A stretch of DNA of 64,000 nucleotides, taken from positions 7,440,001 to 7,504,000 of the forward strand of contig JAQFVV010000007.1 in the NCBI GenBank assembly GCA_028023455.1, read 5' to 3'. A program made the position numbers and the translations under genes. Within the stretch, counting starts at the first letter, position 1, and each line of letters begins with the position of its first letter. The stretch comes from Epiperipatus broadwayi (lineage: Eukaryota > Animalia > Onychophora). The notes beneath the pieces are model-generated. The model was not told the origin of the DNA. It ran no database searches and saw nothing but the letters and a program-made list of their open reading frames with translations. Of the stretch, positions 9,076 to 53,835 are shown piece by piece.

Positions 9076-11057
9076 AGCTATAATAGCTTTTAACTCATGT
9101 AACAATAGAAGGTTCATCATAGAATGCATATATAAGGAGTGGTTTGGGAACCTGTTCCAGTGAATGGTCGCAAAACAGTGAAGATAAAATGATGGATGAA
9201 CTGATAAAAAAAAACTTGAATTTGACAGGAAAACATTTTTCTCTCATGTTAATATCTGCCATAATAATTGAAGTTTCATCATTATTAAAGTGATAATTTA
9301 TATTTTTGTTTTCAATTCTAGGTTTGTAATTTACACATACACAAATATTCAACATGTTTTAATGTCCTGCAAAGTATAGTGTGGAAATAAAGTGGCAGAC
9401 TTTGAAACTGAAGACTCACAGATGAATGCCATCTTTTATTACTTCCAATACTCAAATTTCTTGTAAACTAGCAATAAAGCCATATGATTGTATTACTATG
9501 TTATTTTGTTGTTATATTTATAACAAAACTGATATATTAAGTGTATATGCTGAAACAAACTATTTGTAAAATGCATATATATATATATATATTTCTTTTT
9601 AAAATGCATATATATATATATATATTTCTTTTTGTCAAAACCTAAACTGAAATAAATTCACTAAAATAAAAATTCAGAGCAGAGAGTTAATAATGAAATA
9701 CTCCAGTAGAGAGTCCAAAATCTATTCTTTTCAATTGTAGTCTCAAAGTTATGATTTTTCATAATTATGATATAGATTCCAAACTCTAAAGCAGAACTTT
9801 CTTCTAAACATGATCCATTCACAGGTCACATGGGATCTGCAGTAAGAGTTTCCACAGCTGGCCCAGAGGTTTTGAGAGACAATTTCAATTGAATGCATAT
9901 TAAGTATTTTAATTCTATTACTAATTAATAACCATGATGTTGATTTTATTGCCTGGTGTTTTTATTTCATTGTACATTTAAATAATTTTCAAATATAACC
10001 TGATCCAATACATAGGCTATGAGCATTCATGTTGAATGTACATGTGATTAGCATATAATTAATTCTATATTTGTTTTGGGTGCAGTCCTAGAATAAACAT
10101 TTTTTTAATGCAGTTCATGGGACACATAAGAATGAATAGCCTTGCTCTTAAAGACTGAATTGCATATATAATAAATGGAGATTCAAAAAATAAAGCAGTT
10201 TGTTATCAGATTGCTTATTGGTTGCATTTATCTCTTAACCCCGTTTTTTTCTTTATTCATAGATAACAGCATTATTACTTTCTGCATTTGACTCATAGTT
10301 CAAACTCCAGTAGTATCTTTAGAACTAAAGAAAATGAAGCCATTAATTAAAAGCTTTGTATTCTGAAAAGCCAAAAGTACATTTTTTTTTTTTTACAGTC
10401 CTCGTCCATTACACGCGCGCGCATACACACTATCTCGATTACCTTGTTTAACTATTATTATATTTTAGATCTAATTGCCATATATTAATTATCTATTTAT
10501 GTCATTAGATAACTGGGATAATATTAATTTTAATAAAATTACTATTTAGTACGATATGTCTGTTTTCATGAGATATATATAAAGACTATAAATGCTTTTA
10601 ATTTCTAAATTTGGATAAAATCTAGGTCAGTGGTTTATTCATCTATGAAAAGAAATAAAATGAGAAATTAAAAAAAAGGAAAAACATTTGACATAAATCA
10701 AAAATTTAAATACTGCATCAATGAATTAAAAAATAGCAAACGGATTGAATTTAGCAATATCCCCACCCCTAATAATCAAAAATAATGTAAATTCGAAATA
10801 TTTATAAAATAAATTTCAAATTTAATTATTAGTTTTCTGCAAAAGAATGGGGAAGAGATTACAGAGGGGGAAGGGGATACTTAACATCAAATTTTCATAT
10901 ATAATTTTTTTTTAAAAAAGTTAACATCTAGTGAACAACTTTAATAATAGTTTTTTTTAAATCAATTACTTCTGCTTACTTTAGCTTGTGCTGCATTAGC
11001 CCTATCTCCACTGCACTTTGATTATGCTAAAGAATCAACTTCAAGGGATTTGGACTT

Positions 11058-11400
11058 TTCATCATCAGATTTTCAGTGGTATGGATGGCTGAAGAGTTGG
11101 AGATTGGAGTAGATTGAAGCCTATTCATTAAAGTATGAAGATTTGCTATCTTAATATAACTGAACAGTGATTATATATATATGTGTAGAGATGATAATCT
11201 GGACCATCTGATTAGTGCTGGCTTAGCACAAAATACACTATTGTTGATTATTTATCTTTTCTACATGTGTGTGGTCATGGGTATCAGTGGCCTGAGATAG
11301 TGTAAATAGTTGATGGGTACTTGAAAGACTGAGTTCAAATCCCCTACATTTATAAATTACTATACATGCTTCAGAATGTCTTTTTACAATGTTATTTAAT
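11058..11400 (+). mobile_element. Family A HHR repeat, single degenerate copy
   Basis: HHR at 11188-11256 with the core mutated to CTGATTA/AAAA and stem II GTGCT-GGCTT-AGCAC intact. Confidence 0.85.
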
Positions 11401-15917: not shown

Positions 15918-16740
15918 CATTAGAAACCGGTCAACACTTAGACAATCCATATGTAGATAATAATTAAGAATTTCAAACTGTTGTCAAGGCAACCTTCTTT
16001 TAGCAATAAAATGGAATCCCATGTCTATTAATGGTCCTACATATTTATATAGATTGCAACTTGACCACAGAGATTGAAATTATTGATAGAAAGAAGTTTA
16101 AATAACCCTTCTTAAACAGGTAAATATAACCTATTCTAAATGCAGACTAATAAATAGTCAATTGTAACTTTACAAATTGCAATTACAATTTTCAAATTGC
16201 TCCTGTTAAAGCGTAAGGATTTGCTATCTTAATATAAACTGAGCACTGATTATATATATGTATGAGACATGGTAATCTGGACCAAGTGATAAGTGCTGAT
16301 TTAGCACGAAATACATATATTGGTGATTATTTATCTTTTTTGCATGTGTGTGGTTATGTGTGTCAGTAGTATGAGATAATGTGAATAGTGAAGGGGCTTG
16401 AAAGCCTGAGTTCGAATCCCTTATATTTACAATTAGGCTCCGAGTATAAGAATGCCTGGTATTTCAAATATTATTTAAATAATAACTGTAATAAAGCTCA
16501 AGACTAAATGGGTTTATTAGTCTGCATTCAGAACAGTTATATTTATCTGTTTAAGGAAGTTTATTTAAACTTCTTTCTATCAATAATTTCAATCCTTGTG
16601 ATCAAATTGCAATCTTTGGTGTCTATATAAACATATGGAACCATTAATTGCTAAAAAGTGTTTTGCCTTGATAACAGTTTGAAATTCTTGATTGTTACCT
16701 ATATTGGAATTGTCCAAGTATTGACTGGTTTCTAATGGTT
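15918..16740. repeat. Family D inverted repeat (arms about 240 bp) enclosing a family A copy
   Basis: 15918-16160 is the reverse complement of about 16512-16740. Confidence 0.8.
16208..16480 (+). mobile_element. Family A HHR repeat copy
   Basis: HHR at 16265-16336: accaa GTGATAA GTGCT-GATTT-AGCAC GAAA tacata TA ttggt; B-box-like GAGTTCGAATCCC at 16408-16420. Confidence 0.88.
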
Positions 16741-19519
16741 ACTTACAAACCATTTAGCTTTGAGTATTATTATAGTTATTATATAAATATATATACATTA
16801 ATTTTAGCTAAAATTATTTCTATTTTGTGCAGTAAATAGTATTTTTTTATAAAAATCAAAACTATCAATATTATTTTATCCTAAACCATCTACTTTGCTT
16901 ATAATAGTTGATTATCACTAATTTTATAATGCAATCTGATATATGATTTCTTTTTTAAAAATAGAATTTTTGTATTTTTCATAATCTTAAATTTATTAGT
17001 TCAAAATGTGAACTGTTATTCATATTTTTTATCTGTTTGAATACAGGTAAAAATAGCTAGGAAAAATGGTAAATATGATCAAGAAATAATAATTGATTAG
17101 TTAGTGATGATTTATTATTGCTTAATACAACCTTAAAATGATTTAGTCTAAAATTTTAGTATTTAGAACCATAACACAAACTTTTAATGAGTTATATACA
17201 ATATTTAGATGGATTAATTAAAAATTGATTGGTTAATTAAGTTGTTAATACACCTAGACCTCACTTAGCACTTGGCTACTTAGTGATATTTTGCAATAGT
17301 GATCATCATCAATTTGTATCCAGTACTTTGATTTACAATCGATTATTCACTATAACGATTGGGAAAATTTTTTTAAAAAATTTTTTGGGGCAGCCATCTT
17401 GAATTTTGCATCACTGATGACATCAGAGAATAGGTATTTTGAATTCAATTTACCCAAAAGTACATTACTGTAATACGTATATAGGTAATGACTTTGCTGA
17501 AATTGTATAGCATATACAATATTTTATTCATAAAACACAATGTTAGTGCTACATTCAGTATTTCGATTATAGAATGTATAAACTTAAAATATAAATAATT
17601 TTGCAAATAATAATATTTTAGTATTTAAAGTCTTCGGGATGAACACGTGATGTGTGTACATTGTATTGACTGATTACTAAATTGCTGAAAAGCAAAAGAC
17701 AGAAAACAGACTTGAGATTCATTAATGAAAGAAAAACTTCAAACTATTTTTCTAATAAATATTTCTTAATGATAGAAACGAAAATCATCAAGATTATTAT
17801 CAACTACCTATTCTTAATCTTTTTTTCAAATTAAATATGATAGATGACATTGGATATGATAGTGAAATTAAAAAATTTAAGAGTGCAAAGAACTTTAAAA
17901 AGATTAGTGAACTCTATCATAAGAAGGTTTTTTAAACATATACTTAAACTTTTAACTCCACGACACATTATTGAAACATTAGTGAAGAAGATAAATGACT
18001 GTCAAGGTGCAATTCATGCTGAGCCAACAATTGCCAGATGGTCAAGGCCACAATCACTCTTATGATTACACAATATTTATTAATACATAGTAATTGCAAT
18101 TTGATGAACAATTGCCAAACTTTTTTCACTCACATGGCATTGATAATACTTGACAAGTAATGAAGAGAGATATATAAATTTGTAACCCATGTGCCAAATA
18201 AAGAGTGCTGGTTCAACATAAAATGCATCTTGGAATCATTTATCTGGTTCAGATGCCATTTATTCATGTTTTAAAAATATATGATGGATTGGAAAATTTA
18301 AATATATTTAAAAAAGATGTTACATGAAAAGACAGATGAAATTGAATTATTCCACATGTTTATGATTAATTAAAAGCAAACATTAATCTTTAATGTGAGT
18401 TTTAAAGCTTATATCTGGACTAAAAATGATATAATAATCTATAATCAAATAAACGATTGGTAATACTCATTAATGATCTATCTGACATAGACAATGTCAA
18501 AGTTATGAGTGCCAGCAGACTAACTGTAGTAATGATGATAGTTTAAATTATAAATATGGTTCAGGAATAATGTGATAATTTCTAGATTAATACATTATTG
18601 ATAATAATCATTGCTGTATTTAACTAGAATGGATGTTATCAAAGTTTTGAGTACAGTAAGTTTGGAACTTTTTATTAATTGCAATAAGAATTAAGTATAA
18701 TGGTTATATCAAAATTGAGCCACTGATTCAAAAAGCATTATTTCAAATAAAATATTATTTTTTAGCATTCTTTTTATTCTATAAAAAATAAAATTATTTC
18801 ACACCAGTTTTGCATAAAGAAATATACTTTAACACCACCAGAGAAGTGAAATCATGAATTATTAGGTTAATAGGACCAACTGATGATGTAACTATTGTAT
18901 GCAGTTGTCATATTATCTCAACTTTTATAGCAATCCCATGGAATCATTAAGAACAAAGAAAAAATATTTAAATAAATAAATAAAATGGTAATGAAGTTGT
19001 TATAAATAAGTAATCATATGAGTAGTCACATAATAGATACTATGATGTTCTAGCATTAATGTAAGCACTACAGTTCCATTCAAGTGATATAAATGATATG
19101 CTTTTCCCCCTTCCTTTGAGATAGACTCAGAAACCTTCCACTTATGAGCTCACAACTCTATCATGGTAGTAACAACACCAAAAAAAAAATATTATTAGCT
19201 ATTTTAATGAAAGTAAAAATAAGACAGAAAAAAAAATTACATTGGTTTCTCAGTTCATAAAAAAATTTGAACATCATAAAAGACAGAACTGGTCACAATC
19301 TAAGATTCTTGATTTCTTGGGTCTATCTCTACATAACAGGACAAACCATGCAGAGAAAAATAACTGACTGGTTTATTGTTTGAAGGTTTATAAAAAATTC
19401 AAGCCCCCAAAATGATAGCATTGGATCATGATTGGGGATCTTGATCTCTAGTGAAGGTGACTACAACTCCACCAAGTCTTACCAAAAAAAAATTCAAATT
19501 AGTTTTAACTCCAGAAAGA

Positions 19520-19767: not shown

Positions 19768-20095
19768 ACGTTCCATCATCAGATTTTCAATGAAATGGAA
19801 GGCAAAAGAATTGCGAATTGGAATAGTTTGAAGCCTGTCCATTAAAGTATAAAGATTGGCTATCTTAATATAAAGCTGAGTACTGATTATATATATATAT
19901 GTGAGGATAGTAATCTAGACCAACTGATGATTGCTGGTTTAGCATGAAATATGTATATTGGTGATTATTTACCATTTCAACGTGTGTGATCAGGTAGGTC
20001 AGCAATATGAGATGGCACTGGGAGTGATGGGTTGTGTGAAGGTCTGAGTTCGAACCCTACATATATAAATGCAAGTTTAGGCCTGTACAATGTGT
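19768..20095 (+). mobile_element. Family A HHR repeat copy
   Basis: Homologous to the other family A copies over about 330 bp. Confidence 0.88.
19903..19972 (+). ncRNA. Type I hammerhead ribozyme (family A)
   Basis: Stem I accaa/ttggt plus taatc/gatta; CTGATGA 19924-19930; stem II tgct-ggttt-agca; GAAA 19946-19949; stem III ATATGTAT; AUA cleavage triplet 19955-19957. Confidence 0.8.
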
Positions 20096-23000: not shown

Positions 23001-26000
23001 TGCTTGACAACTGCATAGAATTCCCAGGTGTAAAGATTCTAGTACACACTCTAACTGGGAACCACAGGAACAAAAAAAAGGGGGAAACAGTCTTAGCCAT
23101 TTAAAGCCCTTGAAGAAACGAAGCGGTCTCAAACATCAGATACACCTACCAGCAACACTCGAACAAAATACATAAAATCTTTTAAAAGGACTCATTTTAG
23201 TTTAATAAGGTGCCTAATCAATTCCCAAATATTTATTTTAAGAAAGTCTGTACATTCTCGATCTCAAAATTATAAGTTTTGGAAATTAATCAAAAGACAA
23301 TAAAACATATTTAAAATGGGAAAATGCATAATTACGAGGTTTTATAATAAGACAGGAATTAATATGCAATCACACATTTGTATACTATTTACTCATTAAC
23401 CTTGCACATATACTCACATTATGTTAAAACAAATAGATATGTGGATTTTTAAATGCAAAATTATTTAATGATTAAAAGATATTAAGATAGCCCTCGAATG
23501 AGTGATTTAATGAGATATTAAAATAGGACCAATTTATAATTAAAACATGCTAATCAGCAACATATTAATTTAACACAAAGAGAAGGAGTAATTTGCTCGA
23601 TCGATGGCTATACTGGTACACCATCATAATAAAAGAAAACTGATTAATAAATACAAAATATTAACCCAAGTATAGAGACAGAGCACAGTAAGTTATAGAA
23701 ATTTTACAAAAAAAAAACATTTTAGGATAGAAAACAAATTAAATTAGCTATAGCATATGTGAAGGAATATAATTTCACAAGAACTCTTGGGTTAATTAGG
23801 TTACCTCATCAGAATTAGGGCATTTAAATGCATTTTCATATGGAGACTTTTCTAGTTTGATGGCAGAAGCATTGACAAGAATTTGGCAGTAACTTTTGAT
23901 TCAAAGTTCACAGATTCAATAGTGGTGGCTGTTTTTAGGGTTTCTTACATGAAGGCATCAGATGGCATGATATGCAGCAGATTGCCATTTCTGAAAGGAA
24001 AATAGCCTTCTTGCTGGCTCTACTTTGACATTTTCAATTTTTCGTTAAAGGCTGGGGTGTGCAGTTCTCCGAATACAACTGGCTTGAGTTTCTTATAGTG
24101 GAATAAATTCTTAATTCTCAGCAAATTTAACTTTTACAAAATAGCTTTTTAACTCACAAATATAATTGAATACTTTAAAATTTACTTGGCAACTAATTTC
24201 TGACTTTAATAACAATTTGCTTGAAGACTAATTGTCCATTCTCACAACTTAGTTGTTCACACTGCTTGTTAAAATAAAACCAGCCTTATATATATGAGAG
24301 CTGTACAATAATACTGCCCTGCAGCATAACACATACCCCCCAAAAAATTTGTTATCTAATCGATGCTGTAATTAAACTTATCCAAACATCCAAAGAATTT
24401 AACAAATGTCATAATTAATTTTACTATTGTTAATTACCTTGTAGATATTCCGATTAAAACTTTAATTTCATTTTAGAAAAAGCTTCGCTAATTAAAAATA
24501 CCTTAAATGGGTGGACATCTGCTGTATTTCTTGATAAACCACTAGAATATATTAATTAAAACTATTGTTTTCTGACCAACCCTCATTTACTTTTTACATA
24601 AACTTGATGGCGTGATTTTAAAATCTAAAATAACAACTTATTTACTTTTTTTAGTTTTTAATGTTTAAATCTACTTATGAGATGAATATAATTTTATTTT
24701 AAACTAAAACAAATATTACGAATGTAATATTTTTTTTTATGAATAGATTTAAACAGAAATAATTTTAAATAACAAAATATTATTTTAACTTAAGTTTTAA
24801 AATGAATATACAGCAGTAAATACGACCTATATAACCTACTTTTTAAACGAATATCTTTACGTGTACATACATATAATTTATATTAGTTATTTCTGCTGGG
24901 AATTAGAAATATATATATAACACGAGCGCTTTACTCGTGGTTTAAAATTAGGCGGGATTTTCGGCATATAAGCGTATTACAGACACACTACTATACATTG
25001 GGGCTTAAACTAAGGTATGAGGGCAGGAAAGATGTGAGAAAAGGTGAAACGAAGATCTGCAAAGCAAATCTGACTGTTTCAACACTAACGACGGTAAATT
25101 AAAATGAATGCATATTTTATTTTCTATATAAAATAAATGTTAACAATATTCCAAAATTTAATAATATATAAAATTTAAGATAAATAAATTTCTCAGGGTA
25201 TTCTTGTAAATGTACGATAATAGTCTTACTGAATTTTTAAACATATATATTCTGTTGATTTTTCTAGTGTAAATAAGTACTTTGATGCAAAATAATATCT
25301 ATTTTAAATAAAGTTAGCAATTTAATTAACCGTTTCTCATTCCTAACTCAAATGTAATATTCAATTAATTATTTATAAAAAAAATTTATTTTAATAAAAA
25401 AATAAAAATTTTTATATTTATATTTTTTTTTTTTATTTTTTAATTTTTTTTAATTTAAAATTTTGATGAAGAAAAAAAAATGAAAAAATGGGGGTTTTTT
25501 GTTTATTAATGTATATATATTTTTATTTTGGTAAAAAAAAAAAATTTTTGAAAAGAAAAAAGAGAAAGGAATTTTTTTTTTTTTGATAATATTGAAAAAC
25601 ATATTTTTTAAAAAAAAAAGGGGGGGACCTTTGTTGTGTTATTATATTTTATTAATTATTTATCTCAGGGTTATTAAATAAATCAATCTTAATCATTTCA
25701 TTAAAAACATTTTTTTAAAAAAAATATAGATTTAAATTTAATAAGTTATTCTAGATATAACGAATGTAAAAAGGGAATTTTATTGCACATCGCTCTACCC
25801 TACTAATTTGTATTTGAGAAAGCAATAGTAATAATAAATGGCGTATAAATTTTAATAAATGAATATAATAACTGAAATACAGGCTTATTATATACCTGTA
25901 TCAAAATATGTAATATATAGGGTATGTAAGCACAGACTTTCACACGACCCACCACTCTCCATTCTATCTCATAATACTGATACACTTGAACACATATATG

Positions 26001-26006
26001 TCGAAA

Positions 26007-26077
26007 AGATAAATAATCACCAATATACGTATTTCATGCTAAATCAGAAATCATCAGTTGATCCAGATTATCATCTC
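26007..26077 (-). ncRNA. Type I hammerhead ribozyme (family A), stem II weakened
   Basis: Reverse complement: atcaa CTGATGA tttct-gattt-agcat GAAA tacgta TA ttggt gattat. Confidence 0.7.
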
Positions 26078-26353
26078 TACACATATATGCAATAAGTGCT
26101 CAGATATATATTAAGATAGTCAATCTTCATACTTTAATGGGCAGACTTCAATCCACTCCACCCTCCAACTCTTCAACCGTCCATCCAATTGAAAATCTGA
26201 TGATGGAATGCTCAAAGGCCACCCTCATCAGCAGATTTTCAATTGGATGGACGATTGAAGAGTTGAAGGGTGGAGTGGATTGAAGCCGGTCCATTAAAGT
26301 ATGAGGATTGGCTATCTTAATATATATCTGAGTACCTATTGCATATATGTATA

Positions 26354-26425
26354 GAGATGATAATCTGGACCAACTGATGACTGCTTGTTTAGCATGATAT
26401 ATATATATATTGGTAATTATTTATC
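26354..26425 (+). ncRNA. Degenerate hammerhead ribozyme (family A)
   Basis: CTGATGA at 26374-26380 is intact; GAAA is replaced by GATA within an expanded AT run. Confidence 0.55.
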
Positions 26426-29400
26426 TTTTCAACATACATGTATTCAAGTGTATCAGTGTTATGAGATAGAGAGGAGAGTGGTGGGTCGTATGAAAGTATG
26501 TGCTCATATACTCTATATAATAAATGAATATGCAATTTAATAGATTAAAAGTATGACCTTTTATTTCAATATAAACAGAGACTGATGATTTCAGTAGTGA
26601 CATACATATGTATTTCAATATAACAATTGCTTTATTACAAATAACAAGTATATAAACAAAATAATAAAATTACAAACAAACAATACCAAACTAATTTAAT
26701 AACAAAATTCTATAACAATAATCAATAAATATTAATGTTTGTTCTTCTAGAATAAGCTGAGCTTGGGTTATGATTATGTGTGCAAATGTTGCAAAGAAAT
26801 AAAACAAAACCTATTTTTACATACAGGAGGATAAATATATTTTATAATGTACTTAATTATCTTGGTAATAATAAACATTAGACTATCAACTTCATTCTAT
26901 AAAAACCTGGCTAATTCTTTCACTCTTTCAGAGTAAGTAAAATTATTGACATAAGACTCCTAAATGATATACAAAATATATAGCTTTACTTATTATATAT
27001 TCATATCCTTTACAAGAACAACTTGTTATGCTTCTTATATTACTCAAAGTTTAAATAATTAGTTAGGAGTGACTAACAAAGACAATTTATTTTATTTATA
27101 TTTTCTGAATGCCTTATTGTATAGTGTAGCATTTTAAAATTATACAACTATCATAGAGCTGTACAAATAAATATCTCTTAGTAATTTAATCACTTGCACA
27201 AAGATTATTAGCTACTTATAAATCAGAGGCTGAAATTAACATCTAATAAAACCTAAAGTAAGTTAAACATAAATAGATTTACATAAGTTTATATGTTAGT
27301 TTAACTAAATGCAATCTGACACCAATATACAATGTAAATAACATATAATACATTCATACCCAATAGCATTAATAAAATATATAAAGTTGTTAGCTGTACT
27401 TTCAATGATTATAAACTAAATAATTCAACAATTATAAACAATGTTTATTTAAGTAATTCTTCAAACTGTAATCCTACAGGTTGTGAACAGATGAAAATTA
27501 TCCTATGAAAATATTTTCACTTTGCAGAGTATTCCGATGTTTATTATTTACTGTCAATACTTGAACATAAGTGTTAGATATTAAATTAGATGCACAAGGT
27601 TATTTCTTTTGTACGTTTAATCTTCAGTGACATTTAATATAATGATTTTTCAAAAAAACAACAACACACATTTAGTAATCCTATTCTGATTGTATAGTTA
27701 GCACATTAATCCATTTTAGAATATCCACTGATCAATTTATGACATTCATCATATTCACATATTGTGGTATTTAGAACCTTAAATTCATTATTAAAAAAAA
27801 ATGATGTTGAATTGTGGTTTTTAAGTAAAAAGAGCAGTTTAATTCTTTAGAGAACACTTGTAAACTAATATCCCTATGGTTGGTGTTTATCACATACTTT
27901 GAAAGTAGTAAATTATTAATCCTTTGGTTTAAATATATTTAATTTATTTTGCTATGTATAGTTCAGGCTATTTTAACAATTAATAAGACCTAGCAAATAA
28001 ATAAATAACTCATAGATAAATTAACTATGTTGATTCTCATTAATAATTAAGCATTTTATCCTAAAGTGAGATTCAATATATAGATTTAGATTTATTGTAT
28101 AAAGTATTACTTTTCAGTAATCTGTAATAAGGTAATCCATAGTTTCCAAATGTGTTCATTCACAATTATTTTGAAGGTTTGATGATAAATATCCTGCAAG
28201 AAATATTCCAAAATTTTCATTAGTAGTTGAAAGTAGTAAATTGAATTTTGATGAAAATGGTATTTAGTGATAATCCCTGATAACATTGTTTATCCATTTT
28301 AGTTTGAGGAGATGATATTTTAACAGCTGTCAAAATGTCTTGAATAAGATTGTTTACTCTGACACCATGAAAAAGGTGGTCAAAATGGTTATTTTAAAAT
28401 GTAATTTGATCATATCTTGAATGCACTGTAATTTTACAAAGACTGCCTGAATTTTCCCAAGCACTTATTTATATATATATATATAGTCTCTGGTCAGCTG
28501 GTATCTCAATTAGTCATCATTTCACACACAAAGCTTTTAGTCTTTGTTGGGAAAATTTTTCCCTGCTATGGTGATATGGAAAAGCAGATAATCAAAACTT
28601 GTCTGGTTTTATTTGAAATGTTTAAATTTTCCAGACATTGAAAGAAAATAAATTAAAAAAATATAAAATTTTTCAATCATTTCACCTGTGCAAATTTTTC
28701 AATCATATCACATTGATTTGACTGAAAATACATTTTACCATTATTTATTTAACAAATAAGTTATAAAAGCCCCATAAAGTTCTCAGATATTTGTTTATAT
28801 AAATTTATTTTAATAAATACTTCCTAATCGAAGTGCAATACTAAACTTAATTGACTAGTTTTATAATTTTTAAATTGATGAAGTTTTAAACACTTTAATT
28901 TTCATGCACGCACACATATTTATTTTAAGTGAACTGTTAATGTTACTATTTTAGCTAAATACAATCTCATTTGTAATTATTATTTTACAGTTATTGTAGA
29001 ACTGTTTTGTAATGTTGGATTTATTATATCCTATTCTGTATATCTTTCTACAATATCAATTTTATGCCTGTGTGCTTTTTATTTGTATGTAAAAATTCAA
29101 CTATGGTTTTCAAATAAATAATAATAATACAGATACACATATTTTACATTTGCATTGATTAATAAAATCTGCTCAGAAGACATCTTTAAATACTTTCTCA
29201 AAATTTATATTCTTATAGGCAGTAATGTAAGAGACTTTTGAATTTTACTTTGACTATATTTTCTGATGGCTGATCAATAATAATGGGGGATTTACTTGGC
29301 TTAACCAGAAAATAAAGCCAATATTTTTTTTTAGTTTTTAGCTATATTTGTTAATTATGATAATAAATATAAGGTTACAATATATATATATACAAATATT

Positions 29401-29744: not shown

Positions 29745-30850
29745 TATCAGGGTCTTCAATTCGAATTTTCAAGCATCTTACATTTATCCAATCTATCTTG
29801 TAGAACTCATACATATAACCACATATGTGTGAAAAAGATCAATGATCTCCAATATACATAATTTAGCTGAATTAGCACTCATCAGCTGGTCCAGATCACC
29901 ATATCCCACACATATATACAATAAAAATGCTCAGTTTATATTAAGATAGCACAACTTTAAACTTTCATGGACAAGCTTCAATCTTATATACTCTTCAACA
30001 CTACAGCCATTTATTTCATTGATAAATCTGAGAATGGAATGCTCAAAGCCCTTTTGGATGCCAATATTATTTCCATACCTATGTTGACCTTAAATCAATC
30101 TGATTCCTCACATATAAGACCTTAATATGTCCATTTAATTACACAGAAAAAGGATGGGCAGAATACAGGCTAAATATGTAATATTTAAATATATGTATAA
30201 TGTCTATACTAAATTTAATGTAAGTATAAGGCTCTTGAACGTTCAAGTACCATACATTTATCCAATTTATCTTATACAACTGATACACATAACCACATAC
30301 ATGTAAAAAAATCAATGATCTCCAATATACATATTCCATGCTGAACCAGCATTTAGCAGTTGATCCAGATCATCATCTTCCACACTTATATACAATCAAT
30401 TCTCAGTTAAATTAAGATAGCAAATCCTTAAACTTTAATGGACAAGTTTTAATCTTCTGCACTCTCCAACTCTTCAGCCATCCATTTCATTGAAAATCTG
30501 AGAATGAAAGGCTCAAAGCCCTTGTTAAGGTCAACATGAGTATGCCAATAATATCAGCATCAACAAGAGCTTAGAGCATTCCATCCTCATATTTTCTATG
30601 AAATGGATAGCCGAAGAGTTGGAGAGTGTAGAAGATTGAAGCCTGTTCATTAAAGTTTAAGGATTTACTATCTTAATATAAACTGAGCACTGATTGGTTC
30701 AGCACAAAATATGTATATTGGAGATCATTGATCTTTTTCACATTATGTGGTTATATGTATCAGTTGAATAAAATAAATTGGATAAATGTAGGGTACTTGA
30801 AGATTTGAGTTCAAGACCCTTATAATGACATTAATACATATATTTAAATA
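29745..30850. mobile_element. Family A subfamily: head-to-tail dimer (minus) plus inverted copy (plus)
   Basis: HHR remnants at 29837-29905 and 30311-30379 (minus) are 474 bp apart; the inverted arm at about 30575-30850 has a partly deleted HHR at 30690-30733. Confidence 0.85.
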
Positions 30851-32690: not shown

Positions 32691-33164
32691 AAACACATTT
32701 CCCTTGAGCATGAATTTCTTAAAATGTTAATAGAAAATGTTATATGAAAATATAATTATCGAAAAAGTCTTTTAAAAATAAAACAATATTTGAATGTGAT
32801 AGGACTTTATAGTTATATCATATTATCATCAACATAAATAAGAAATAGACAAAATCTTATTTTATTCATATTTATTTCTATTTCATACCAAAAATCATTC
32901 CACATCTTGCTGAAGGTGACAATATAGGTTAGTTTAGTATTTTTCTTGTTATGACGTATTACACTTAACATGTTTTTTGCCGGTAAGATTTTATCGAAGA
33001 TTAGATAAACAATGCCATGTCAACAAAAACACTGGCATGACTAATCCATGGGAATGGTGATTTTTTGATCGTGATGACCCATGAGATTTAAAAAGTCGAG
33101 AGACCAATGGAAAATTTTGTCTTTTCTCTGTCATTTGCGGTTTTGATATCGGCGTGAGCATAGT

Positions 33165-33279
33165 ATTTTTTTTTATATTAAGTGTCATAGCATCGGCCGG
33201 GACGCGAAGCTGCAACCCGAGCAACTGTCTGCAAGTGCAAGGTAGTCGCGCTGACCTCTCTCGACCACCAATGCAAGAC
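33165..33279 (-). mobile_element. Short tRNA-derived SINE inserted in the foldback arm
   Basis: 9-bp TSD gagcatagt (33156-33164, 33280-33288); empty site in the opposite arm near 37500; acceptor-like stem GCATTGG/CCGATGC (33190-33274); A tail. Confidence 0.85.
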
Positions 33280-33766
33280 GAGCATAGTGTTTTTTTTTTT
33301 TATCATATTGAGAATATTTTTGTATATTTCATATTTAATATGGACATTATATTACCATATAGAGTGAATTTTTAACTGTCAATTGGATGATATTATAATT
33401 TTCCACCGCTGTTATTTGTAAGTATTTTCATTTTGTTTCTTAATAATTAAATACAGTAGCTTTTAAGATGTTTTTATATGTCACCTTTACAGTTATTTTT
33501 TTATTTTGTAGTGATAATTGTAATATTATTTTAAACATAGATGTATGTATTATTATTTTAAACATAGTTGTACGTATTTCTATATATATATTTAACGCTT
33601 GCTTCTTTTACATTTTCCTTAGAAATTATTAACTGAAACACAGGCTTATTATATACCTGTGTCTATATATGTAATATAGGGTATATGAGCACAGACTTTC
33701 ACATGACCCACAACTCTCCATTCTATCTAATAACACTGATACACTCAAGCACATATATGCTGAAAA

Positions 33767-33836
33767 GATAAATAATCACCAATATACGTATTTCATGCTA
33801 AACCAGCAATCATCAGTTGGTCCAGATTATCATCTC
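33767..33836 (-). ncRNA. Type I hammerhead ribozyme (family A)
   Basis: Reverse complement: gagatgataatc tgg accaa CTGATGA ttgct-ggttt-agcat GAAA tacgta TA ttggt gattatttatc. All core nucleotides are present; the 10.1-11.1 pair is U-U. Confidence 0.85.
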
Positions 33837-34527
33837 CCACACATATATACTATAAGTGCTCAGATATATATTAAGATAGACAATCTTCATACTTTAATGG
33901 ACAGGCTCCAATCTACTACACACTCCAACTCTTCAACCGTCCATCCAATTGAAAATCTGATGATGGAATGCCCGAAGACCACCCTGAGGCCGAGATTCTT
34001 GTCACACCCATGTTGACCTAAAGTCAATCTGAACCCCACATGTACAGGACATAATCCATTAAATACATATGCAAGGATGGGCAGACATCTCTATAATGTA
34101 ATAACTGAAACACAGGCTTATTATATACCTGTGTCTATATATGTAATATAGGGTATATGAGCACAGACTTTCACATGACCCACAACTCTCCATTCACAAC
34201 TCTCCATTCTATCTATATTACATATATAGACACAGGTATATAATAAGCCTGTGTTTCAGTTATTACATTATAGAGATGTCTGCCCATCCTTGCATATGTA
34301 TTTAATGGATTATGTCCTGTACATGTGGGGTTCAGATTGACTTTAGGTCAACATGGGTGTGACAAGAATCTCGGCCTCAGGGTGGTCTTCGGGCATTCCA
34401 TCATCAGATTTTCAATTGGATGGATGGTTGAAGAGTTGGAGTGTGTAGTAGATTGGAGCCTGTCCATTAAAGTATGAAGATTGTCTATCTTAATATATAT
34501 CTGAGCACTTATAGTATATATGTGTGG

Positions 34528-34597
34528 GAGATGATAATCTGGACCAACTGATAATTGCTGGTTTAGCATGAAATACGTATATTGGTGATTATTTATC
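34528..34597 (+). ncRNA. Hammerhead ribozyme (family A), G8 mutated to A
   Basis: Identical to 33767-33836 except CTGATAA at 34548-34554. Confidence 0.75.
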
Positions 34598-35139
34598 TTT
34601 TCAGCATATATGTGCTTGAGTGTATCAGTGTTATTAGATAGAATGGAGAGTTGTGGGTCATGTGAAAGTCTGTGCTCATATACCTTAGAAATTATTCTAA
34701 TTTTCATTAAAAAAAACATTTCATAATTGTATGTACTACCTTTTAGGTTATTTTTTATTTTGCTTCTTTTAATTCGTTGTCTTCTTTTCCATTTTTCTTA
34801 TAAATTATCCTTATTTTCATTAAAAAAAGACTACACTTTTAATTTCATAATTTTATATAATACCTTTTAATTAAGATGTTTTTTATGACCATCATTTTCA
34901 CCGTATGACAAATTTGTATTATTTATGGAAAAGTGTTTTTTATTGTCCGTTATTACAAATATTTTTTATAAATTTTTCTGCAATTATTTTGTAGTCAATT
35001 TGAATTTACAATAATTTTAGTAAATTACTATTAATTTATGTATTTTTTTGTCACATGTACATTTTTTTTTATTTTTCAAGGAACAACAAACATGGTGCCA
35101 TCCGATATTCCTTTTCCTATGAGATGGATTCTTTAGTAT

Positions 35140-35760
35140 TATTCTTGCTATATCTGCTGGATGTCTTCTTTCATATTTTTCTTGCTATTAGGTGTTTTCT
35201 TTCATATTTTTCTACCTATTAGAGGTCTTCTTTCATATTATTCTTGCTATTAGATGTCTTCTTTTGTATTATTCTTGCTATAAGATGTCTTCTTTCAAAT
35301 TTTTCTCACTATTAGATGCCTTCTTTCATATTTTTCTTGCTATTAGATATCTTCTTTGATATTATTATTGCTATTAGATGTCTCCTTTCATATTTTTCTT
35401 GCTATTAGATGTCTTCTTTCATATTATTATTGCTATTAGATGTCTTCTTTCACATTTTTCTTCCTATTAGATGTTTTCTTTTGTATTATTCTTGCTATTA
35501 GATGTCTTCTTTCATATTATTCTTGCCATTATGACTTCTTTCATATTATTCTTGCTATCAGATATCTTCTTTTGTATTTTTCTTGCTATTAGATGTCTTC
35601 GTTCGTATTATTCTTGTTATTAGATGTCTTCTTTCACATTTTTTTTGCTATTAGATGTCTTTCTTTCATATTATTCTTGCTATTAGATGTCTTCTTTAGT
35701 ATTATTCTTGCTATGTCTGCTGGCATCTTTAGTATTATTTTTTAATTATTCTTGTTATTG
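35140..35760. repeat. Minisatellite of about 30 bp inside the foldback left copy
   Basis: Roughly 20 units of ttattcttgctattagatgtcttctttcata. Confidence 0.92.
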
Positions 35761-36129: not shown

Positions 36130-36480
36130 TAAAGATTTTGGCAGACATATTGAAAATAATACTAAAGAAAACATCTAATAGCAAGAATAATATGAAAGAA
36201 GACATCTAATAGCAAGAATAATATTGAAAGAAGACATCTAATAGCAAGAAAAATATGAAAGAAAACATCTAATAGCAAGAATAATATGAACGAAGACATC
36301 TAATAGCAAGAAAAATAAAAAAAAACATCTAATAGCAATAATAATATGAAAGAAGACATCTAATAGCAAGAAAAATATAAAAGAAAACATCTAATAGCAA
36401 GAAAAATATGAAAAAAGACATCTAATAGCAAGAAAAATATGAAAAAAACCATCCAGTAGATATAGCAAGAATAATACTAA
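36130..36480. repeat. Same 30-bp minisatellite, inverted, in the right copy
   Basis: Roughly 11 units of tatgaaagaagacatctaatagcaagaataa. Confidence 0.92.
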
Positions 36481-39400
36481 AGAAGCCATGTCATAGGAAA
36501 AAAAATATCGGACAGCACCATGTTTGTCAATCTTCAAAAGAAAAAAAAATTACATGCGCCAAAAAATATATAAATTAATCATAATTTACTAAAATTATTG
36601 TAAATTCAAATTGACTACAAAATAATTGCAGAAAAATTTATAAAAAATATTTGTAATTTTAAAATTAAACAGACAATAAAAAACACTTCCTGATATAGTG
36701 GGAATCTGTCATACAGTGGAAATGGCAAATGTAAAAAAAAGCCATATCATAGGGTAAAAAATATCAGATGGCACCATGTTTGTCGTTCCTTGAAAAATAA
36801 AAAAAAATTTATATGCAATAAAAAATACACAAATTAATAGTAATTTACTAAAAATATTGTAAATTCAAACTGACTACAAAATAATTGCAGAAAAATTTTT
36901 AAAAAATATTTGTAATTTTAAAATTAAAGACAATAAAAAAAACACTTTCCCGATATGGTGCGAATCTGTCATATGGTGAAAATGGTGGATGTAAAAAACT
37001 TCTTAATTAAAAGATATTATATAAAATTATGAAATTAAAAGTGTAGTCTTTTTTAAATGAAAATAAGGATAATTTATAAGAAAAATGGAAAAGAAGATAA
37101 TGAATCAAAAGAAGCAAAAAAACAAAAAAACAACCTATAAGGTAGTACATAAAATTATGAAATGTTTTTTTTAATGAAAATTAGAATAATTTCTAAAGAA
37201 AATGTAAAAGAAGGAAGCATTAAACATATATGGAAATATGTACAACTATGTTTAAAATAATACCACAATTATCACTACAAAATAAAAAAAATAACTGTAA
37301 TGGCAACATATAAAAACATCTTAAAAGCTACTATCTTTAATTATTAAAAAACAAAATGAAAATTTCTTACAAATAACAGCAGTGGAAAATTACTATAATA
37401 TCATCCAATCGACAGTTAAAAATTCACTCTATATAGTAATATAATGTCCATATTAAATATGAAATATATAAAAATATTCTTAATATGATCAAAAATATCA
37501 CTATGCTCATGCCAATATCAAAACCGCAAAAGACAGAGAAATAACAAAATTTCCTGTTGGTCTCTCAATGTTTTAAATCTCGTGGGTCATGATGATCAAA
37601 AAATCACCACACCCATGGATTAGTCATGCCAGTGTTTTTGTTGCCATGACATCGTTTATCTAATCTTCGATGAAATCTTATCAGCAAAAAAACATGTTAA
37701 GCGTAATACGTCATAGCAAGAAAAATACTAAACTACCCATAAGAGAGAAAGACAAAGAAATATAGTTAAAAGTACATTTAAAAAATATATAATTTTGTTT
37801 TTAGAATAAAGCTGTTTATTAAAAACAGGTGGTAAAAAGAATTAGAAGAAATAATTTAAATTCACTCTCTCCTCTTTTTCTAAATTAAAATAATTAAAAA
37901 AATAAAATGTCTAAAAATAAATAAATGTAAAATATTAAAATAAAATTAGTTATAAAAGAAACATTTGTGAAAATATCTCATCAGCAGAAAAGCAATTAAT
38001 TTGGAAAGATTCCTGGGGGATAAGATATTAGATTAATGTAATAAACATTAGATAAAATGAAATGTAAAAAAAAAAAACTAATTAAAAATAGATTTAAGTT
38101 GTGATAAAAATTAAAACTATGATAAGAAAATAAAAATGGGAGATTTAGATACAAAAGTGAGACTTAGCTATTGTTATATTTATTCCTGATTCATATTCAA
38201 ATTAAAAATCATTCACATTCTGAAATTCTAGAGATTCATTCAGACATCTGGAGATTCAGATATTCAGAAATTTAAGTGCAATAGAGAACCAATCATTACT
38301 GATGCAGACAACATTAATGCAGAAACTGCAGGATTAGCAACATGTGTTGCAAGAAAGCCATAGAATGTTCAACTAAGCTTCATGCCCAAACCATCAGCAA
38401 AATTAACTGTCCTAACCTGGAACCAATGCCTAAACTGGAAAAAGATGCTGCTGCATACTCTCTCTCTCTCTCTCTCCCATTGTTGAACCTAAGAATGGAA
38501 AATAAGCACTGAAACCATCAATGGAGACCAAAAGGGCAACCAGTTGGAAAGTAACACTAATAAAAATCTAGGTAAATATATTATCAATAAACTGTCTAGA
38601 CATATTACTTATTTTAAAGTGACAAGAACTTTAATGAAGGACTATCAGAAAATTTAGCCTTAATGTATTTGTTTATAATTACTTTACATAAAATTTTATT
38701 GTATTATATTACATATGTGTGTGAGTAAATAAACAATAATATTTGCTTAATTGTTAGTTGGCTTCGTCTCTCTCTTGTAACTGTGTCATCATTAATTTAA
38801 AGGTAAAAATATTGGTATATCTGAAATAAAATGTGCCGAACACCCTAATTATGAGTAGGTGCTATTTTGGAATATTTTAAGTGCTGAATTCATGTGCCTG
38901 AGTTTTATTCTCAAAACAAATAAAATACTTTGGATGGCAGTTTTTGTGATAGCAGTTGAGGAGTGCTATGATCAGGAAATATGGTTGGGCTGTGCATTTG
39001 TATAATCTTGACATGGCCATAAGTATGATTGATGGTTCCTTGATCAATGGCATTTTACCCCTCTGGTTGAAGGATCATTCCATTTCAGCAGGTATTAAAG
39101 ATATAATTAAATAATTGCATAAAGTAAAATGATAATAAAAAGATCCTATAAATAAATAATAAATAAAATAATAAAAAGGTATTATTAAATAAAGAATGTC
39201 TGGATATAATAATAATGTATCAAGAATAAATATTAATATTAAGCCAATAAGCTGTTAAAGTTAACATGAAAAATAAGGTATTGCAGGTGGATCCAGGGTT
39301 CAATATAAAGTACCCAGTTATATTTTCTGCTCACCACACATCAAAGCACCTCCCACTGAGTCTCAATTAACAGTAAGGCATAAGTGTTTGTTTAAATATA

Positions 39401-42486: not shown

Positions 42487-42879
42487 ATAAATATATATGG
42501 GATTTGAACTCAGACTTTCAATCTCTTTCTTTCACTCTCCACACTATCTCATACTCCTGATACACTTGCAGAAAGTATAAATAATCACCAATATACATAT
42601 TTTGTGCTAAACCAGCATTCATCAGTTGGTCCAGATTACCATCTCTCATACATATATATATATAATCAGTGCTCAGTCTATATTGAGATAGCAAATCCTT
42701 ACACTTTAACGGACAGACTTCAACTTACTCCAACCTCCAACTCTTCATTCTGAATGTGTGTGGTCATGTGTATCAGTAGTATGAGATAGTGTGAATATTA
42801 AAAGGGCTTGAAAGTCTGAGTTCAAATCCCCTATATTTACAATTAGACTCTAGGTTTAAGAGTACCTAGTATTTCAAAT
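42487..42879. mobile_element. Family A inverted-arm insertion with 10-bp TSD
   Basis: TSD gtcacttata at 42477-42486 and 42880-42889; minus arm 42487-42747 with HHR at 42577-42646; plus arm 42753-42879 with tail hairpin. Confidence 0.85.
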
Positions 42880-53175: not shown

Positions 53176-53835
53176 AGACTAAAGATTATTCATTTAATGA
53201 ATAATATTTATGTAATGTAATTTTCACTACAACATAAGGTAGAGACTGTTTTCCATCTGCTTTTCATGTCTTGTGGAGGGATGTAACCATAAACATATGA
53301 CAAGTGATAAATGCTGGTTTAGCATAAAATGTCCATCTTGAAAATTATATATCTTTTTCACATGTCTTTGGTTATATGTTTATGATTATACCACTGCACA
53401 AGATGTTAAAAGCAGATGGAAAACAGTCTCTATTTGCATGAGAGTGGTGTAGTAAAATTTACAATGCACAAATATTATTCATTAAGTACATAATCTCTGG
53501 TCTAAATTATTTATATACTTCCATCAAATGGTTTGTGTCAATGTTGTGAGGGTGGTAAGTTTGACACTTATCAATTGAATAGTAGTAACTGGCTGTCTAT
53601 ATATACTGAACAGTAATAAAGATATGTGCAAGAGATTGGAATCTGGAGCATCTGATCAATGTTGGTTCAGCAAGAAATGTGCATCCTTGGAATAACATAT
53701 CTCTTTCACATGTCTTTGACTATATGTTTATGATTATACCCCTCCACAAGTTGTTAAAATCAGCTAGAAACTGAACTCTACATTGCATGATAGTGGTGCA
53801 GTAAAAATGATACTACAGAAATGTTATTCAATAAA
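53176..53835. mobile_element. Older family A-related repeat: hairpin plus direct repeat with two degenerate HHRs
   Basis: Inverted arms 53176-53300 / 53370-53503; direct repeat about 53640-53835; HHR remnants at 53296-53345 and 53645-53692. Confidence 0.65.

Follow-up and report, generated by a model that had tools for sequence, protein, structure and literature searches.

The window analysed here was a stretch of 64,000 nt of the Epiperipatus broadwayi genome (assembly GCA_028023455.1, 5.6 Gb; contig JAQFVV010000007.1, positions 7,440,001-7,504,000 of the forward strand), and all positions given without a locus label are coordinates of this window. Positions 33631-34684 were found to be a single insertion of a 472-bp non-coding repeat, present as two head-to-head arms that bear a hammerhead ribozyme motif each. 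Very probably, this insertion is a young, non-coding and non-autonomous animal retrozyme of the type without long terminal repeats (non-LTR retrozyme), most likely inserted by the reverse transcriptase (RT)/GIY-YIG endonuclease that a Penelope-like element (PLE) of the same genome provides. The observations comprise the insertion anatomy, the target site duplications (TSDs), an empty target site, the logic of the strands, the number of copies, the conservation and covariation of the fold and coexisting intact PLE open reading frames (ORFs), and a PLE would be the mobiliser to which they point.

Anatomy of the insertions

The insertion was bounded by two identical copies of a 12-bp TSD (TTAGAAATTATT), the left one at 33619-33630 and the right one at 34685-34696. 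An inverted paralogue of the flanks (83-87% identical) was located 2.5 kb downstream, in which the same 12 nt appeared only once and unbroken, at 37185-37196 on the minus strand. Since the paralogue keeps this empty site, the insertion is younger than the duplication of its flanks, and both the TSD and the empty site in the sister foldback arm, which the first-pass annotation of this DNA had described, were recovered. Arm 1 (33631-34195, RNA sense on the minus strand) comprised a full unit (positions 1-472) and then positions 1-93 again (1.2 units), its plus strand being the presumed cDNA strand. Its first letters were AACTGAAACACAGG, a start shared by 13 other loci on the same side and, in the opposite orientation, by 11. 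Arm 1, unlike arm 2, carried at its outer end a tail (33631-33676, minus strand) lying between two reverse-transcription starts and including the hairpin ACACAGG...CCTGTGT at 33638-33662. An inner head-to-head junction of 17 nt followed (34196-34212), at which a 14-nt slipped duplication presented CACAACTCTCCATT twice (34181-34208), and the inverted arm 2 (34213-34684, RNA sense on the plus strand) comprised unit positions 49 to 1 and then 472 to ~50 (~1.0 unit), its outer end being devoid of a tail.

Both arms were 99% complementary over 475 nt (33677-34151 vs. 34213-34687), and the real differences between them were the two that had been estimated by eye, at 33811/34553 and 33939/34425. The divergence was thus 0.4% between the arms, and this copy departed from the family majority by 1.1%, the sample median being 2.8%. 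Such youth, taken from the sequence, suggests that the family may still be inserting at present. The unit showed a G+C content of 0.38 and a tandem spacing of 472-473, the self-comparison giving the spacing of 472 expected for a repeat of about that length. The absence of any ORF, claimed at first pass, was nearly true: a 73-aa frame antisense to the ribozyme was present at 33795-34016 (+), starting within the complement of helix II. Of 44 full-length young copies, 30 kept it intact, a number that probably does not exceed what a divergence of 3% predicts. As a gene, this frame found no support. In the other arm, a frame also antisense to the ribozyme was noted at 34348-34719 (-). Moreover, no tRNA was found in the unit by ARAGORN, on which result a tRNA or RNA polymerase III (Pol III) module was rejected. 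Regarding the surroundings, the flanks belong to a large diverged foldback (33000-35300 vs. 37664-36164, inverted, 83-87% identity), with arrays of a 31-bp tandem repeat between its arms (35117-35739 and ~36141-36508).

To place this anatomy within the family, a sample of 26 independent genomic loci chosen by full-length match was considered, 22 of them with twin arms and four with a single arm. One arm began exactly at AACTG/AACTGAAACACAGG (unit position 1), right after a run of target sequence mostly ending in AAT or TAT, and extended from one to more than four units before stopping at a variable point. In 16 of the 22 twin-arm loci, the outer end of the inverted arm fell at unit positions 33-47, just inside a 7-bp hairpin (positions 8-32). 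On the other hand, the inner ends were scattered between unit positions 45 and 390, and the inner junction was different at every locus. Duplications of variable length, mostly of 10-16 bp, were found at approximately 24 of the 26 loci, and the copies were scattered over many contigs, each with its own duplication. A partial tandem with an adjacent inverted 5′-truncated copy was present at 22 of the 26 loci, as it was at 33631-34684, and the same insertion plan was seen at 25870-26518.

When both 3′ ends of a staggered break serve for target-primed reverse transcription, the marks left are defined outer ends, ragged inner ends and variable duplications. In an insertion of this kind, the cDNA is the strand into which the 3′ end of the flank continues, and therefore the RNA template is its complement, which here is the hammerhead-bearing strand. 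The location of the hammerhead on the predicted template strand was a check that could have come out otherwise. Overall, the TSDs, the defined outer and variable inner ends, the template strand and the PLE ORFs upheld the earlier proposal of a non-coding, non-autonomous retro-element mobilised in trans.

A spread at the DNA level, whether as a foldback or miniature inverted-repeat transposable element (MITE), as a Helitron-like rolling-circle element or as a satellite dispersed by recombination, would account for the inverted repeat, which is nearly perfect and has a hairpin close to one end, and for the existence of tandem units. However, the termini are asymmetric, with a tail of 33-47 nt on one of them only, and the inner junctions differ from locus to locus. 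Transposases leave duplications of a fixed length and Helitrons leave none, whereas those found here varied in length. Dispersed copies on many contigs with duplications of their own and the empty paralogous site also oppose such a spread, which is almost certainly not the explanation. In particular, the asymmetric ends, the variable duplications and the differing inner junctions contradict an ordinary DNA-transposon MITE, the other identity considered at first pass.

The machinery behind these marks can be compared with that of PAc, the Poseidon PLE of Anolis, which cleaves and extends both target strands, with a preference for ATT, and whose reverse transcription begins within the RNA, at two neighbouring sites on either side of an AC-rich stem-loop (PMC11167929). 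Genomic copies have the sequence between both sites as a tail of 30-40 bp, at one of their ends only, and the starts lie ~85-125 nt downstream of the hammerhead cut (PMC11167929); in the present family, they were found ~105-152 nt downstream of the predicted cut. Furthermore, PLE copies are typically partial tandems accompanied by an inverted 5′-truncated copy (PMC8557442). By their two start sites, their one-sided tail and their apparent priming from both strands, the insertion scars match Penelope-type machinery specifically, and of the two labels offered at first pass (retrozyme and Penelope-like) they favour such machinery as the means of insertion.

The main competitor for this role would be a long interspersed nuclear element (LINE), that is, a non-LTR retrotransposon with an APE- or REL-type endonuclease, mobilising the element as a passenger similar to a short interspersed nuclear element (SINE), with the inverted arms arising by twin priming. 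LINE insertion is known to involve AT-rich nick sites and twin priming and to leave 5′-truncated copies with duplications of 10-16 bp, and no PLE partner was identified by sequence similarity among 38 loci. Nevertheless, twin priming was reportedly observed by Ostertag and Kazazian in 2001 in a minority of L1 insertions, and here twin arms were the rule (22/26) rather than the exception. No poly(A) or simple-repeat 3′ tail was present at any of the 26 loci. Moreover, the two discrete starts ~40 nt apart that flank a hairpin, the multi-unit arms and the type I hammerhead are PLE hallmarks, and extension of both strands has been reported for a PLE but not for R2 or L1 (PMC11167929). Mobilisation by a LINE thus appears improbable, and a PLE is preferred.

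The hammerhead motif

The hammerhead core was evaluated at positions C3 U4 G5 A6 N7 G8 A9, G12 A13 A14, the pair A15.1-U16.1 and H17 (not G). The left-arm copy (33772-33830, minus strand; type I topology) presented all of them, with CUGAUGA, GAAA, A15.1-U16.1 and A17, and the predicted cut between 33783 and 33782 of the minus strand reproduced the position given at first pass. Its helix I is open, contains a UGG bulge and extends into a long rod, helix II has 4 bp with U.U at its base, and helix III consists of two pairs capped by ACGU, AUACGUAU being a self-complementary palindrome of 8 nt. In both copies of this locus, as in the whole young subfamily, stem II was UUGCU/AGCAU. Thus, the type I fold of the consensus initially drawn by eye held, but its stem II (GUGCU/AGCAC) turned out to be that of the older copies. 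The hammerhead core was intact in the left arm but not in the right arm, where copy 2 (34534-34592, plus strand) had the core CUGAUAA owing to a G8-to-A change at 34553. Going by what mutagenesis of hammerheads has established, the right-arm copy should be inactive.

A set of 22 diverged copies was used to assess the fold. The paired cells amounted to 81.6%, compared to 27-47% when the partners were slid, and the covariation score was beaten by one of 500 shuffles. The covariation check proposed at first pass returned nine pairs altered on both sides, including pairs of stem I (A-U in 10 and G-C in 8), of stem III (A-U in 13 and G-C in 4) and position 10.1-11.1 (G-C, G-U or A-U). Moreover, helix III shifted from AUAC/GUAU to AUGU/GCAU and was still self-complementary (-6.5 and -6.0 kcal/mol, respectively).

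The combination of a basal U.U in helix II and a helix III of 2 bp is also the design of the axolotl hammerhead HHR_Amex2. Cleavage of this ribozyme is weak in the monomer and efficient in the dimer, and axolotl retrozyme RNAs are circular in vivo (PMC7229834). By analogy, the left-arm copy may cleave itself at 33783|33782.

Coexisting Penelope-like elements and the proposed cycle

A total of 10,243 GIY-YIG candidates were found in the genome, and all 150 that were scored lay above the Pfam cut-off. PLE open frames of 875-901 aa bear RT and GIY-YIG motifs, and relatives of the PLE ORF carry RVT_1, with a GIY-YIG domain at the C terminus. Furthermore, a PLE unit of 3,135 bp appeared in tandem with an inverted truncated copy, with its own duplication of ~10-12 bp. 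At two of the loci (L061:3373-6006 and L064:4586-7222, the latter on the minus strand), intact-looking PLE ORFs of 875-878 aa were noted, with a sense strand almost free of C and a protein rich in K, N and I. A Pfam hmmscan of these two ORFs returned no family even at E<=1, although RT (YVDD) and GIY-YIG motifs were visible, a failure that is probably due to the extreme K/N/I bias. Some 300-420 nt past the stop codon of these ORFs, whose proteins are 43% identical, the stretches L061:6300-6350 and L064:4150-4200(-) presented TTGAAAA, a short hairpin and GAAACGTT. This motif reads like a minimal hammerhead in which the C3-G8 pair is replaced by U3-A8, and the inverted PLE arm in L061 ends ~17 nt past it.

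Several results weigh against a PLE-mobilised retrozyme. To begin with, the autonomous partner was not found when the unit (by BLASTN) and a hammerhead descriptor were compared with 38 PLE loci of several lineages, out of more than 10,000 candidates; the sole matches of the unit in these loci were chance insertions of the 472-bp family, and no homology of the unit to the pseudo-LTR (pLTR) or 5′ region of a PLE was present among them. The sampled PLE lineages carry the non-canonical motif TTGAAAA...GAAACGTT downstream of the ORF, and not CUGAUGA. The primer ends AAT or TAT could reflect a microhomology of 2-3 nt with the RNA, unlike the published initiation with 'no homology'. In addition, the insertion ends of the present family lie off the ribozyme cut site, so that the DNA copies can be explained without cleavage, and PAc with a dead ribozyme inserts equally well in vitro (PMC11167929). 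The covariation counts came from related, decaying genomic copies, few independent events standing behind them. The RNA steps of the cycle proposed below are read from DNA, and a search of sequencing runs for this stretch returned none that is recorded as RNA. Finally, the Rfam search suggested at first pass gave a negative outcome for this copy: hammerhead models did not match the young copy in the whole window at gathering thresholds, nor in 2.3 kb and 101 nt around it at E<=10. An older relative (L020:2968-3013) reached 23.9 bits (E 4.5e-4) with Hammerhead_1 (RF00163), below the gathering score of 34. Yet this relative aligned to the full model, including the loop-less stem III, a design of helix III that the Rfam model shares, and therefore the silence of Rfam was not read as absence of the motif.

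Part of these results would also be expected if the hammerhead were a conserved passenger or a protein-binding module, the family spreading from uncleaved multimers without any circular RNA. Both the insertion ends and the inner junctions ignore the cut site, and the most successful subfamily is the one with U.U at 10.1-11.1 and no Rfam score. Moreover, the PAc ribozyme depends on protein, its cut site showed no RNA ends (PMC11167929), and Naiad PLEs thrive without hammerheads (PMC8557442). As PAc inserts with a dead ribozyme, the role of the ribozyme may lie in processing RNA or in binding protein, and not in integration. On the other hand, the core and the three helices are kept in more than 75,000 copies and across species, the self-complementarity of stem III is maintained by compensatory change, and the axolotl retrozymes cleave, best as dimers, despite their U.U and short helix III (PMC7229834). 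A mere passenger role was accordingly judged possible, though the less likely option, and an active ribozyme with a circular rather than an uncleaved multimeric template is what the retrozyme reading would predict.

In the cycle proposed for this retrozyme, the element would be transcribed as a multimer on the hammerhead-sense strand. Its type I hammerhead, with a helix III of 2 bp capped by the palindromic ACGU, would be able to pair with the motif of the neighbouring unit because of this very design. A cut after AUA would release monomers of 472 nt, which a host ligase could circularise. The PLE protein would then make a staggered cut in AT-rich DNA, with primer ends mostly AAT or TAT, and both 3′ ends would prime cDNA from internal starts at unit position 1 or ~33-47, flanking the hairpin. 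The two cDNAs, from 0.5 to more than 4 unit lengths, would pass unit boundaries and the ribozyme site and be joined head to head, with repair leaving a duplication of mostly 10-16 bp.

Regarding the form of the template, the arms run through the cut site and their ends ignore it, which calls for either an uncleaved multimer or a circle. No clear excess of inner junctions was detected at the ribozyme cut site (7 of ~45 at unit positions 150-190, compared to ~4 expected). In 5 of 24 cases (L005, L020, L021, L022 and L027), the length of the tail arm departed from exactly one full unit by no more than -3 to +13 nt, and the right arm at 34213-34687 likewise stopped near one full unit length. This cluster of near-full turns is a hint of a circular template, weakly significant and drawn from loci that were chosen by full-length match. 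It is tentatively considered that the insertions record rolling-circle reverse transcription of a circular retrozyme RNA of 472 nt. If so, the internal start of the PLE enzyme would let it copy a template without a 3′ end. Genomic footprints of a circular template would then be seen in the twin arms, in the arms that exceed one unit and in the near-full-turn stops, and these features would constitute the first anatomical, not correlative, proof of animal retrozymes as parasites of PLEs.

Family copies and known systems

In the window, the 11 hammerhead-bearing copies listed at first pass were all present (11.2, 16.3, 19.9, 26.0, 26.4, 29.9, 30.3, 30.7, 33.8, 34.5 and 42.6 kb), and the hammerhead core pattern had seven matches compared to 0.21 expected by chance. 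Four further hammerhead-like copies, diverged and with decayed cores, were added to them at 17984-18059(-), 18176-18250, 53282-53359 and 53630-53707, the ribozyme block being the only part that they have in common with the 472-bp family. A second, older twin-arm insertion of this family was located at 25870-26518, with a 13-bp duplication (AATAAATGAATAT), its arm 1 running from unit position 1 to 355 and its inverted arm ending at position 44. Moreover, an older multi-arm copy of a related subfamily (74-78% identical) occupied 29787-30782, and further old copies were found at 11049-11350, 16206-16427, 19771-20046 and 42493-42837. The copies of the older subfamily bear GAGTTCGAATCCC on the ribozyme-sense strand, ~20 nt before the inner reverse-transcription start (11331-11343, 16408-16420, 20046-20058, 42499-42511 on the minus strand and 42818-42830). 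This sequence resembles a tRNA T-arm or a Pol III B box, with seven matches compared to 0.19 expected; in the young subfamily it is changed to GTGCTCATATACCC, and ARAGORN detects no tRNA.

Across the genome, the exact 59-nt hammerhead of the young subfamily was present in 3,849 copies, the backwards-pattern control giving none, and a looser half-motif (with TCTGG, CTGATGA and GAAA fixed) gave 75,641 matches, compared to three in the backwards control. Among the first 100 half-motif matches of those listed, approximately half were of the young UUGCU...AGCAU type by hand count, and most of the remaining ones had G-C, G-U or A-U as the basal pair of helix II. A search with the unit returned at least 1,792 candidate places, the best 40 of which scored 94-98% identical, in tandem or inverted arrangements. 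The median identity was 96.7% between units of one insertion and 94.6% between units of separate insertions. Within the young family, the ribozyme region was the least variable part of the unit (0.6-1.2% vs. 2-6% elsewhere). Furthermore, a cross-species profile was built from contigs assembled from runs of four other organisms, relying on the ends of the matches and not on depth. These contigs matched mainly 33751-33830, and since their similarity stops at the two edges of the ribozyme (33762-64 and 33827-34), the ribozyme block is seen as a module common to families and species.

Among known elements, the closest likeness is with the metazoan non-LTR retrozymes (Cervera and de la Pena 2020, PMC7229834), which are also non-coding, of low G+C content (38% here) and a few hundred bp long, with a single type I hammerhead in each of their tandemly arranged units, duplications of more than 4 bp, copy numbers that are very high and coexistence with PLEs. 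Unlike them, the present family has a unit of 472 nt, compared to a reported RNA of 170-400 nt, is known from DNA alone, and appears mostly as short twin arms placed head to head, not as long arrays. In particular, the axolotl HHR_Amex2, of ~60,000 copies, shares the U.U, the 2-bp helix III and presumably the better performance as a dimer (PMC7229834), but it belongs to another host, with no sequence relationship shown, and the present motif has the AUACGUAU palindrome (tetraloop plus stem) and a long stem I rod. The plant LTR retrozymes (PMC4918200) are likewise non-autonomous and hammerhead-bearing, and their circular RNA intermediates would have a counterpart here; however, none of their type III hammerheads within LTRs, primer-binding site and polypurine tract, 4-bp duplications or mobilisation by Gypsy elements was found in this family. 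The likeness to PLEs, both PAc (PMC11167929) and others (PMC8557442), lies in the priming from both strands, the AT-rich cleavage sites, the two internal starts flanking a stem-loop, the partial tandems with an inverted 5′-truncated copy and a hammerhead ~100 nt upstream of the starts. In contrast to PLEs, the element has no RT/GIY-YIG ORF, shows no similarity to the 38 sampled PLE loci and possibly uses the primer microhomology of 2-3 nt.

A link between retrozymes and PLEs dates from a proposal of 2020. A preprint of 2026 (bioRxiv 10.64898/2026.07.22.740005), arguing for it from homology, likewise concludes that retrozymes depend on PLEs. This kind of element is already published (PMC7229834; bioRxiv 10.64898/2026.07.22.740005), and the result leaves the catalogue of known kinds unchanged, the family adding a clear new example. 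Its >=75,000 ribozyme motifs and near-identical copies offer a natural system in which to ask whether the hammerhead is needed for mobilisation and whether the template is circular, with the right arm at 33631-34684 as a natural G8-to-A control. A term search of the text of the preprint returned no discussion of the tail, of inverted insertions or of TSDs of non-LTR retrozymes. The preprint relies on co-occurrence and pLTR homology, mainly in vertebrates, whereas the argument made here relies on insertion anatomy, without pLTR homology to the 38 PLE loci sampled, and is therefore a different type of evidence for the same link: dozens of young, cleanly bounded insertions whose ends reproduce the two starts, the one-sided tail and the both-strand priming measured for a PLE.

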